Below are positions 47,766 to 63,519 of a stretch of DNA of 64,000 nucleotides, piece by piece. The translations under genes were made by a program, and so were the position numbers. Each line of letters begins with the position of its first letter. Within the stretch, counting starts at the first letter, position 1. This DNA is from Bugula neritina (lineage: Eukaryota > Animalia > Bryozoa): NCBI GenBank assembly GCA_964035545.1, contig OZ037770.1, forward strand, positions 2,480,001 to 2,544,000, read 5' to 3'. The notes under the pieces were generated by a model. The model made no database searches. It was not told the origin of the DNA and saw only the letters and a program-made list of their open reading frames with translations.

Positions 47766-49229
47766 TTATGGGTTAAAGCCAGGAAATAAGTAGAGCTTTC
47801 TGTCACCAGTAAAGAAACACTCATCTGTAGGTTGCTGCCCTCTGAAGTGTCCGTACATCCTATTGGCTAGTATACTCTTGTCTCTCACTTTCTTCTTTAC
47901 CTACATCAGTTACGCAACTGGTGTTACCACCGACAGCGTACCGACAGCGTACCAACAGCGTTAGCTCTGAGCTGGTCATCACAGTCTTTCCGCCATTTAC
48001 ACTACATTCTCACACAACACACGTGCCGAATCCCACAAGAGAAAGGACATCTCTTAGATGTGAATAAAGACAATGACTCACCTGTTTGAATATGGTCTGA
48101 ATGTCACGGTGACAGGAGTGTTTGTAGAGAGCCACTACAAGGGCTCGGATAAACCAGGTACCTTGTCGAGAGTGTCGCGTTGACATGAAACCTGTGTACA
48201 CTAACAAGGCTTACATCACTGGGTACCATGTACACACACACAATGCTTACATCACTAATTAATGGGCACACATGTAGAATTACTTACTAAGAAAGTTGGC
48301 TTTCATGATATGCAGATCGTCAGTTGATAAGTAATCCCCGGGGAAAGGAGATTCTACAGTCTGAGATTGTTCTTCAGTGTTGGAGGAAGGTGTAGACACT
48401 TGAGCATCACTGACTGTGGAAGCTGTGTCACTGGTATACTGACCCATTGTATCCCACCTCTCTACAAGTGTGTCACAGCGTATACCTACACCGTATAAAC
48501 TAGAAACTACAAGGTATAAACTAGATACTACGAGGTATAAACTAGATACCACAAGGTATAAACTAGATACCACAAGGTATAAACTAGATACTACAAGGTA
48601 TAAACTAGATACTCACTGCCAGAACAGGCTTGTAGAATAACGAGCTTTGGTTTGCCAGCCATAGCAGGAAATTGGTAGGCGGTGAGAAGGTCAAACACAT
48701 CGGAGTATTTGATTGGCTGATTATCTGTGCCATAAAGTCTGTTCTCCGTGCCATGAGTCATGATTACAAGAGCACTAACTCCGACCTCAGCGTAGCCTGG
48801 GTTCTTTGTCTCTTCCCGTATCGTCTCCAGCATCTCCTACATTACATTACATTATATAATACAATTATTATAGAAATACATTATATAATAGTATAACAAT
48901 ATAGCATATTGTATTATATAACAGTATAACATTATAAAAATACATTGTATAATAATATAACAATATAATAATACATAATATAATAATATATTGATGTAGT
49001 AATACATTATATAATAATATAGTATTACATTATACAATATAATACCAGTACTTTATAATACCTGACTGGTCAAGTTAGTCTTGACTTCACACACAAAGTT
49101 CAAGTCTGTGAAGACACGTGAGATGTTCTTGACGTCCATCTCAGACCCGTCTCTCTTCTCCAGTTTGTCAAAGTAGTGGTTGTTGATAATGAGACACCTT
49201 CCTCTGTGTGGAGTTGTCATCCTGTACAC
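47766..49229 (-). CDS. Caspase (peptidase C14A) p20/p10 domain, five exons
   Basis: [17 protein letters not shown]....[13 protein letters not shown] (catalytic His), [13 protein letters not shown] (catalytic Cys), [25 protein letters not shown]. Confidence 0.95.
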
Positions 49230-61200: not shown

Positions 61201-63519
61201 CTATTCCGCTCTCACAGACTTCTAGTGGAGGAGATGTTAAGGCATTGCAATCCTGTGTCATGAAGAGCCAAAGATGTGTTAGCTGTAGTATCTCAGGGTT
61301 CAAAGATGTCATGGATTTGTTGAAGGATATATTCAGTCTTTGCAGAGTACTTAATGTGCACACTGAAGATGGGAGACTGGTGAAGTTATTACCTGATATG
61401 TTTAGTATCTTTAACTTCTGTAGACTCTGCATCCTGAAAATATGATATATTTCTATCATCAGCAAAAACTAGAGGTAATTAATCTACTTATAGTTGACAT
61501 GATCATAGGCTATTATAGTACAACAACATTTATACACCGCAACAGGGGCTTGTACAAACCATGTTGACATAGTACAGTAAATAAATGTATTTTTAAGAAT
61601 GTGCCAATAATAGTAAAGAATATGAGCATTGTTGCAATTATTATATTATATGTTTAAAATTTATTATATTATCTATATGAGTTCATGGTGCAATTATAGA
61701 TATATTTGACCACAATTATTCAAAATTATATGTACTTTACTGTCATCGAAACATACTCTAGTACGATCACACAGTATATTATACTTCTGTATAGTAGATC
61801 ATTTATTAACCGCATGTTAATATACTGATCTTCTACTATGGATGTAATTAAAATCAAAAGATAATTTTATACTACAGAGCAGGCAACCTTAAGCATGCAA
61901 TATAAAACAGTTATCATCCGATAGAACAAATGCTATGCTGATTTTGCATAATTTGTGTTAAAGAGATGTCAGGTGAAACTATAAATGTCTCCCCTACATT
62001 ATAATTATACTCTAATTTCACTATAAAACGGTTTTAATAAATTTGCGCTAGAGTCTTGTAGACAGAATTTCATAGTTGCAAACCAAATTGCTTATACGGC
62101 GAACTATAGCAATTTATTGAAAAGCCATTTTTTAGCAAATATATTTTGCATTGTTATAAAGACATAAATTTTTTGTAGGTTTTGAATTTAAATATAAATG
62201 TTGAAAGTTGAATAAAAATGAAGTGAACAAATAATTTTTGGCTGTTTATGCTGAGTATTAAAACAGACAGCTGTTATAGTGCCTGCTAAACACACAAACA
62301 ATATTTGAAATTGCAGTTTACTCTTTTATTTTCTCCTCCTAGCCTTGCAATATATTGTTAAGTTAATATTTCTCTGAAACAAAGCTAAAATAAATGCTTA
62401 ATTCAACTGTTTTGATAAACTGTAATGTGAATGATTTTGGTTTTGTGCATTTTTTAAAAAAAGTTATCTTGATTTTTAATAAACCAGAAAAGGGCAGCAA
62501 AAAATATTTTTATATCTTCAAGTTTTACAACATAATAATAATAATAATGGTATTTTGATGCTGATAACAATAATAGTTATATTAATATTTATTTATGTAT
62601 ATATTTATATAATAAATGAATGTGTAACAAGCTAGTGCAAAGAGAATATAACAAAGAAAGAGGCATATGGCAGTGATAATTCACTGCAGGTTGCGTGAAG
62701 TTTGAAGGTCTTTGAGAAGCAAGAATTGCTATACAACCCCAGAGCAGAATCAGTGTGTATATATATATATATATATATATATATATATATATATATATAT
62801 ATATATATATATATATATATATATATATATATGTATATATATATATGTATGTATATATATATATATATATGTATATATATATATGTATATATATATATGT
62901 ATATATATATGTATATATATATATATATATATATATATATATATATATATATATATATATATATATATATATATATATATATATATATATATATATATAT
63001 ATATATATATATATGTATATATATACTCAAGTGGAAATCTCTTCGCTACTGCCTTAAGAATCATGGGTAATAAAAATCGGTCAGAAGTATTGAGATAGCA
63101 TATATTCACTATTAAATGACAGATGTCTGCCTAATATAGCTATATATACCAACAAGATTTAAACATATTATAACATTCAACAGTTATAGCTCAAACTACC
63201 TCCATTTACAGCATATATAATAAACTTTATTGTACTTTCACATGAGCACTCCTTGACAATTGGAAGAATATTGAATTTATATATTAGACTATTGTCTTCC
63301 TGTTTTTTTCTAATTGACTGAAGCTATAGACAGTATACCTTAAATAATTTTCACACAATGCAAAAACTGTGACACACAAACCTCTCAGGTAGAGTAGATA
63401 ATTTACAGCCCATCATATTCAACTCTTTAAGTGATGTGAGTGATGACACAACTTCTGGTACAGTGTTGAGAGGATTCTCTCCTATGTCTAGTTTCTCTAA
63501 CTGAGTCAGCTGACATAGA
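47766..63519 (-). CDS. LRR-Roc-COR (ROCO)-caspase fusion protein, 5'-partial (more than 1080 aa)
   Basis: Exons 63519-63382, 61433-59428, 59164-59078, 57955-57774, 49229-49062, 48836-48617, 48485-48288, 48191-48082, 47900-47766 (TAA). All introns are GT-AG, and phases 2,1,1,0,0,1,1,0 match across every junction. Domain identities are high-confidence; the single-transcript fusion is inferred from phase. Confidence 0.8.
49241..49536. repeat. 11-bp minisatellite (AGTAATATACT)n next to the first caspase exon acceptor
   Basis: Directly visible. Confidence 0.9.
50082..57713 (-). mobile_element. Full-length but decayed Ty3/Gypsy LTR retrotransposon (7632 bp) in the ROCO-caspase intron
   Basis: 692-bp LTRs at 50082-50773 and 57022-57713, about 30 differences by manual count (about 4%); the first base of the left LTR is G rather than T. 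4-bp TSD ATAT. PBS TGGTGGCAGCAGTGGGAT (57003-57020, tRNA-Leu-like). PPT AGGTGAGGAGGA (50774-50785). Domain order PR-RT-RH-IN. Confidence 0.95.
51829..56960 (-). pseudogene. Fragmented gag-pol of the Gypsy element
   Basis: Gag fragments from 56960. Protease [20 protein letters not shown]. RNase [19 protein letters not shown]. Integrase [29 protein letters not shown] and GPY/F PKFVGPY. Multiple stops and frameshifts. Confidence 0.92.
58121..58540. repeat. (TA)n microsatellite in a ROCO-caspase intron
   Basis: Directly visible. Confidence 0.95.
59428..61433 (-). CDS. Large exon encoding terminal LRRs, Roc GTPase and COR domain (MFHAS1/LRRK-type ROCO module)
   Basis: LRRs [15 protein letters not shown] and [12 protein letters not shown] cap [17 protein letters not shown]-loop GNTMAGKTS, switch-I ETT, G3 DMGGQEVY, G4 THKD. 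COR motifs [19 protein letters not shown]-terminal CICAHC cluster. Confidence 0.92.

Follow-up and report, generated by a model that had tools for sequence, protein, structure and literature searches.

A probable single-chain LRR-Roc-COR-caspase gene of the bryozoan Bugula neritina and its paralogues

A stretch of 64,000 nucleotides (nt) of Bugula neritina DNA (assembly GCA_964035545.1, contig OZ037770.1, positions 2,480,001 to 2,544,000; G000:C6:2480001-2544000 in our numbering), hereafter the window, is AT-rich animal DNA that carries on its minus strand exons for leucine-rich repeats (LRRs), for a Roc GTPase with its COR domain (the ROCO module) and for a caspase. Do these exons belong to one gene encoding a single-chain LRR-Roc-COR-caspase, as a sequence-only reading of the window had proposed, or to two neighbouring genes? 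Our analysis indicates that they very probably form one intact gene. Its product would consist of an N-terminal cap, about nine LRRs, Roc, COR-A and COR-B, an acidic, Asp-rich linker of about 90 residues, and a complete caspase. As no RNA evidence for a junction was found, the case for one gene is based on comparison; that comparative case is strong, and splicing at this locus is predicted from the exon boundaries.

Exon structure and domain content

Exons were translated singly by script, with split codons reported, and all sequence and structure searches were done exon by exon. Direct reading and the script both gave AG acceptors and GT donors at all nine exons in the window. The split codons (AGG, TGT, GAG, AGT and AGT) and the phases are compatible throughout, and the frame is open, with zero in-frame stops, from the LRR exon at 63519 to the caspase TAA (47768-47766). 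The large exon encoding LRRs, Roc and COR ends in phase 1 with CCA T/GTATGT at 59428, and is followed by two linker exons, L1 and L2, and by five caspase exons, C1 to C5 (Table 1). L2 terminates in a motif of the type [10 protein letters not shown], with a QLFSNT-like ending. The exon boundaries and phases of the sequence-only reading (59428, 59164-59078, 57955-57774 and 49229) proved exact, and the uninterrupted frame that it had described from the LRRs to the caspase TAA was reproduced by exon-by-exon translation. The gene does not, however, start at 63519: two further 138-nt LRR cassettes and an ATG exon lie farther upstream, the gene start being about 1.6 kb past the window end. The ATG exon (L004:2636-2410, equivalent to G000:C6:2545636-2545410) has a phase-2 donor that fits the cassettes, and it matches the N-terminal region of a relative from another bryozoan, Watersipora. 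The full model comprises 12 coding exons, 3747 nt and 1248 codons over about 17.9 kb (G000:C6:2527766-2545636).

The LRR cassettes and their introns (window 63030-64000 and L004:1-1900) arose by tandem duplication, repeating every 643 bp at 93% identity; contigs C6 and C7 contain the same cassette in hundreds of copies, the search having given 193 matches. Simple repeats are found in several introns: an 11-nt minisatellite of about 26 copies (49186-49603) abuts the acceptor of the first caspase exon, and long (TA)n tracts occupy parts of the L1-L2 intron (58121-58540) and of an LRR intron (62750-63040).

The large exon encodes a true LRR-Roc-COR unit, with the Roc and COR domains that define ROCO proteins. 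Pfam detected LRRs and Roc (30.1 bits for Roc, cut-off 27), and the Roc sequence matched C. tepidum Roco and LRRK1. COR of the window copy was missed by single-sequence Pfam and PDB searches; a family profile and a structure model were used. First, a profile of 14 family members aligned continuously to human LRRK2 residues 1246-1610, from the LRR end through Roc and onward; residue 1610 is one that we take to lie in COR-A. Second, an AlphaFold2 model of the large exon, made from a 54-sequence alignment, had a predicted local distance difference test score (pLDDT) of 89.4 and a predicted TM-score (pTM) of 0.87. Foldseek searches with this model returned LRRK1 (9e-25), the C. tepidum LRR-Roc-COR structure 6hlu (3e-21 over 673 columns) and the COR domain 3dpt (4e-10); TM-scores against LRRK1 and LRRK2 were 0.54-0.61 over about 640-750 aligned columns. 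Furthermore, Pfam detected COR-A or COR-B on the relatives P0043, P0016, P0162 and P0163. The GTPase motifs are intact in the window copy and nearly invariant across the 54 relatives: G1, the P-loop (G104/G109/K110, GxxxxGK(T)), G3 (D158-G160-G161, DxGG) and G4 (T227-H228-D230, THxD).

At the COR-B end (59429-59620, residues about 605-668), C613 is invariant among the 54 relatives, at least 90% of which also have H615, C616 and C656. The window copy has further Cys and His residues there. This cluster, which lies outside the Pfam COR models and just before the linker, is a possible zinc-binding motif.

Judged by its sequence, the caspase is complete and its catalytic residues are intact, as in MEROPS C14A peptidases. 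It displays [16 protein letters not shown] as well as [11 protein letters not shown]. The histidine of THG and the cysteine of QACSG are retained, as are the two arginine motifs that bind P1; in the alignment with CED-3, His and Cys are in register. The closest solved relatives of the caspase exons are CED-3 and caspase-2, -8 and -3. Both the p20 and the p10 subunits are covered, C1 and C2 by Pfam, and C4 and C5 by matches to the p10 region of Watersipora caspase domains. All the domains anticipated by the sequence-only reading were thus recovered, LRR, Roc and Peptidase_C14 by Pfam and COR by profile and fold match. The absence of a CARD or DED prodomain, also stated there, was confirmed in that no Pfam family was found on L1 or L2 at E up to 0.01. 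No match to NACHT or NB-ARC was obtained, the central module being a Ras-like Roc GTPase with COR.

Table 1. Positions of exons, domains and the intronic retrotransposon in the window
Feature	Position	Strand	Remarks
LRR cassette exon, last of three in tandem	63382..63519	-	138 nt, phase 2-2, two LRRs; Pfam LRR_4/LRR_8
LRR/Roc-COR exon	59428..61433	-	single 2006-nt exon; three LRRs, Roc, COR-A, COR-B
Roc GTPase, within the large exon	~60737-61141	-	P-loop Lys110 codon 61105-61103
COR-A, within the large exon	~60023-60736	-	
COR-B and Cys/His-rich tail	59429-60022	-	
Linker exon L1	59078..59164	-	87 nt, phase 1-1, no ATG, no stop; AG/GT
Linker exon L2	57774..57955	-	182 nt, phase 1-0; acidic, Asp-rich; AG/GT
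Degenerate Ty3/gypsy-type LTR retrotransposon	50082..57713	- (sense to gene)	inside the 8.5-kb L2-C1 intron
Caspase exon C1	49062..49229	-	phase 0; p20 start including RxGxxxD arginine; Pfam Peptidase_C14 1.9e-10
Caspase exon C2	48617..48836	-	His 48755-48753, QACSG Cys 48626-48624; Pfam Peptidase_C14 2.1e-11
Caspase exon C3	48288..48485	-	intersubunit linker; Asp/Ser/Thr-rich, fast-evolving; 77-83% amino acid identity to two sister copies
Caspase exon C4	48082..48191	-	p10, SxR...GxWF motif; collinear tblastn matches to Watersipora fusions and 8/9 paralogues
Caspase exon C5	47766..47900	-	p10 end, stop TAA 47768-47766; matches Watersipora protein C-termini

One transcription unit or two

Paralogues, which the sequence-only reading had suggested looking for, are abundant. 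The genome contains at least 66 intact Roc-COR exons. Among the matches listed, 59 of these exons are followed by a same-strand caspase exon no more than 20 kb downstream (median distance 1.6 kb), and none by one on the opposite strand. The family is lineage-specific, with at least 59-66 such genes in this bryozoan genome. All nine paralogous loci that were fetched are collinear with the window gene, with Roc-COR, L1, L2 (found in eight) and then the caspase exons. The phase-1 donor CCx T/GTATGT is retained in 10 of 10 copies. In 9 of 10, L1 is conserved as 28 codons together with its AG acceptor and its GT lead bases; the acidic L2 motif is retained in every copy where L2 was found (9 of 10). 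The AG acceptor of L2, in phase 1, is conserved in three copies. L1 contains neither ATG nor stop, and could therefore be coding only as an internal exon that reads into a phase-1 exon.

The same arrangement is found outside this genome, the nearest named proteins being from Watersipora. RefSeq models of Watersipora subatra (XP_067947674.1, XP_067948342.1 and at least eight more) contain LRR, Roc-COR and Peptidase_C14 in 1105-1835 amino acids (aa) and are collinear with the window exon by exon, with 30-37% identity in Roc-COR and 39-57% in the matched caspase exons. In nine of these models the L2 peptide of the window aligns directly before the caspase domain. Watersipora belongs to a different cheilostome lineage, its LRR numbers differ (proteins of up to 1835 aa), and these are automatic models only.

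Several observations weigh against a fused product. First, the runs that contain this sequence are one low-coverage DNA run of the source individual (X3) and two small runs labelled metagenomic RNA-Seq (X1 and X2). Read mapping covered 59000-62500, a stretch that includes, of the three junctions, only that of Roc-COR with L1; within it no read or contig joined 59428 to 59164, and L1 had zero coverage in the RNA-labelled runs. X1 and X2 yielded short contigs on the Roc-COR exon only, part of them at least 99% alike, with zero depth over about 1.4 kb of flanking intron; DNA run X3 covered the whole stretch, introns included. This exon-confined depth, for its part, counts in favour of the gene as a hint that the Roc-COR exon is expressed, splicing not being proven thereby. 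Second, no cDNA-derived fused protein was present in the protein collections searched, where the close Roc-COR relatives are exon-sized open reading frames (ORFs) from metagenome contigs, the near-identical ones coming from JGI. Third, the third codon of L2 is an in-frame ATG (57950), which is not conserved. Fourth, a partial copy 2.3 Mb away (L018; G000:C6:245001-255000, 1-3073, minus strand) contains L2 and C1-C5, with splice sites kept and 78-93% aa identity, and has no Roc-COR exon within 17 kb, homology ending inside the L1-L2 intron; this copy is dead, or else a module that already has, or has yet to gain, a different 5' partner. Fifth, the caspase module and the Roc-COR exon differ in their histories: the former is 93-95% identical to just two copies, a tandem duplicate of the locus described below and L018 at C6:0.25 Mb, and shares only 41-47% with the caspases of those ROCO paralogues that match the window gene at 82-84% in Roc-COR. 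Finally, a 7.6-kb LTR (long terminal repeat) element lies in sense orientation in the L2-C1 intron and could truncate transcripts.

L018 and the ATG at 57950 keep alive the alternative of two transcription units, a ROCO gene that ends after the Roc-COR exon or L1 and a short-prodomain caspase gene that starts at this ATG. The uncoupling of caspase similarity from that of the Roc-COR exon, and the lack of junction-spanning RNA in the mapped interval, are also as such an arrangement would predict. We nevertheless consider it unlikely. The ATG is a GTG (Val) codon in L018, and L2 of paralogue L009 is devoid of any Met. The phase-1 acceptor of L2 is conserved, and L1, conserved in the paralogues, requires a downstream phase-1 exon. 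Moreover, L2 is internal in the Watersipora fusion models, and 59 of 66 Roc-COR exons precede a caspase exon on their own strand, none preceding one on the other strand. We thus favour a single gene. With respect to the single chain claimed by the sequence-only reading, the open LRR-Roc-COR-caspase frame stands and is strongly supported by the paralogues and by Watersipora, the fusion transcript itself being a prediction.

Duplication, transposon insertion and possible caspase module exchange

The L2-C1 intron, described as Gypsy-filled by the sequence-only reading, does contain such an element. Its LTRs are 691 nt long, are 95.8% identical and have TG...CA ends, with a possible ATAT target duplication. 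The domain order is RT_RNaseH, Integrase_H2C2, SH3_Tf2-1, and RNase H preceding integrase is the Ty3/gypsy order; pol is broken into several ORFs. The insertion is common to the window gene and to a tandem duplicate of the whole locus located 63 kb away (C6:2580001-2610000), and the partial copy L018 has an empty site. The intron was ancestrally about 0.9 kb long. Because of the empty site, the transposon is a simple insertion and not a rearrangement breakpoint. We also considered that the caspase might have come from another gene by rearrangement at the transposon site; this was rejected, as the duplicate has the whole arrangement and L018 the empty site. The LTR-LTR identity is slightly above the copy-copy identity, suggesting that the LTRs have been homogenised to some extent.

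A second, fragmented gypsy-like element with gag, reverse transcriptase and RNase H pieces is found about 2 kb upstream of the ATG exon (L004:4800-8120, equivalent to G000:C6:2547800-2551120). It is related to the intronic element.

The duplicate also bears on the state of the gene. Eight exons were compared: all have equal lengths in the two copies, contain no stops and keep AG/GT, with 85.6% exon identity. L2, C1 and C2 are 96-98% identical (98.4% for L2), compared with 90-94% for introns and transposon. Conversely, the Roc-COR exon, C3 and C5 diverge more than the introns (about 87% nt identity for C3 and C5), an excess that points to gene conversion or diversifying selection.

An ancestral fusion now in decay could account for part of these observations. 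The sense-oriented 7.6-kb LTR element would block the full-length transcript, leaving an unprocessed pseudogene or a truncated ROCO protein; C3 and C5 are more diverged than flanking introns, and dozens of paralogues offer possible redundancy. We regard decay as quite improbable. First, the duplicate carries the same insertion and both copies have kept the eight exons at equal length, free of stops and frameshifts over 3.1 kb at about 14% divergence. Second, L2, C1 and C2 are conserved above neutral sequence. Third, all catalytic residues are intact.

An assembly artefact could in principle have brought ROCO and caspase exons together in this region, where microsatellites, minisatellites and transposon sequence abound. 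There is hardly any chance of this: the duplicate 63 kb away has the same order and the same LTR insertion, dozens of other loci have the same order, and contigs of the independent low-coverage DNA run agree without differences over the exon/intron stretch tested.

Caspase exons in this genome are associated with more than one kind of upstream exon, since both LRR-ROCO and ankyrin-repeat genes carry them. The window caspase is 54-58% identical to caspase exon clusters on C2 and C9, and the sampled C9 caspase exons sit 3' of ankyrin-repeat exons. Caspase exons of the C9 cluster at L022 (below) resemble those of the window more closely (54-57%) than do the caspases of its nearest ROCO paralogues (44-47%), a hint of module exchange.

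Two other loci illustrate the variety of upstream partners. At L022 (G000:C9:9354001-9362000, plus strand), a caspase exon has ankyrin-repeat exons (368 and 192 aa) 1.7 kb upstream of it on the same strand, in a tandem cluster whose members look like ankyrin-caspase genes. At L021 (G000:C7:7656001-7664000, minus strand), the exon found 2.3 kb upstream of the caspase exon is a more divergent Roc/COR-A exon, open over 565 aa. L021 represents a second ROCO-caspase subfamily, clustered at C7:7.58-7.71 Mb and outside the 66 counted above.

Proposed mechanism and comparison with known systems

By analogy with ROCO proteins and proximity-activated caspases, a sensor-switch-protease mechanism is the most likely working model. 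The variable LRR face would sense a ligand, Roc-COR would, like its counterparts in other ROCO proteins, serve as a switch that changes conformation or dimerises depending on nucleotide state, and proximity of two fused caspase domains would lead to activation. Within the Asp-rich linker, DSDSD, EYLD and ENLD of L2 are candidate autoprocessing sites, as is the intersubunit loop. Ligand sensing, dimerisation, protease activity and a role in immunity, allorecognition or cell death are all functions that we infer.

If the fused protein is made and functions in line with its domains, it would be a natural case of a ROCO GTPase replacing the STAND ATPase of NLRs and apoptosomes and activating a caspase without an adaptor. 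It would then inform on how Roc-COR, for example that of LRRK2, couples nucleotide state to an output domain, and on the evolution of caspase activation platforms. With about 60 copies in a colonial sessile animal, the family is a candidate for pathogen sensing or colony allorecognition. More speculatively, and with considerable doubt, the 60 or more genes could together be a diversified set of intracellular receptors for immunity or allorecognition that need no adaptor, a 'ROCO inflammasome in one chain'. Exon duplication would then diversify the LRR cassettes, receptor chassis would swap caspase modules, and Roc-COR switching in response to ligand would directly activate the fused caspase and kill the cell. 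The window copy is of value mainly because it is well defined and intact and can be compared with its tandem duplicate.

The suggestion of the sequence-only reading that this architecture is new is refuted. Models with it exist in Watersipora subatra and in three Branchiostoma species, a ROC-containing caspase has been reported in Owenia, and bacterial proteins have the same order. Most of the Watersipora models go under the name 'malignant fibrous histiocytoma-amplified sequence 1 homolog' or else 'uncharacterized protein', and they are neither called nor described as caspase fusions. In amphioxus (Branchiostoma belcheri, B. floridae and B. lanceolatum; for example UniProt C3ZI91_BRAFL) the order is likewise LRR, Roc, COR-A/COR-B, Peptidase_C14, with only 15-27% identity to the bryozoan proteins. 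The amphioxus LRR-Roc-COR chassis (proteins P0191-P0214) alternatively carries a GT4 glycosyltransferase, Death or OTU domain instead of the caspase. Bacterial AP-GTPase systems have been described as swapping effectors in a similar way. The annelid Owenia fusiformis has a caspase whose pro-domain is ROC and not CARD or DED; it was noted as being unusual, lineage-specific and initiator-like (Horkan et al., 2024, Genome Biol Evol, PMC11463336). Just one such gene is given, in passing, in a paper that mentions neither LRR, COR, expansion nor bryozoans, and the likeness is one of description. Our literature search found no experimental characterisation of ROCO-caspases, the Owenia mention and the bacterial systems being the only reports, and no description of a large bryozoan expansion. 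The domain order is thus already visible yet uncharacterised, and the interest of the window gene is mainly as part of a large bryozoan family.

Among the animal ROCO proteins, MFHAS1, LRRK1/LRRK2 and DAPK1 have the Roc-COR tandem in common with the window gene, and MFHAS1 and the LRRK proteins also have LRRs directly before Roc. They differ in the output domain, which is absent in MFHAS1 and a kinase in LRRK and DAPK; none has a protease. Following the RefSeq name of its relatives, the window gene was considered as an MFHAS1 orthologue. It has a C-terminal caspase and at least 66 genome copies, and such a copy number is not the pattern of a one-to-one MFHAS1 orthologue.

In NLRC4, NLRP1/CARD8 and Apaf-1, a repeat sensor and an NTPase switch lead to caspase activation by proximity. 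In these NLR and apoptosome systems, however, the switch is a STAND ATPase (NACHT or NB-ARC) and a separate caspase is recruited through CARD/PYD adaptors, whereas the window gene has no NACHT and no death-fold domain. It therefore has neither the death-fold prodomain of initiator caspases nor the characters of the NLR/STAND class.

A similar design is known from bacteria. Conflict proteins of the order LRR-AP-GTPase(Roc)-COR-effector, with a caspase as one possible C-terminal effector, have been described (Kaur, Iyer, Burroughs and Aravind, 2021, eLife, PMC8195603); they have rapidly evolving N-terminal LRRs and multiple paralogues per genome, and are read as sensor-switch-effector immunity proteins (PMC8195603). 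The bacterial effector is caspase-like and prokaryotic, whereas the bryozoan one is a metazoan p20/p10 caspase. The bryozoan family shares with these conflict proteins both the architecture and the expansion of paralogues.

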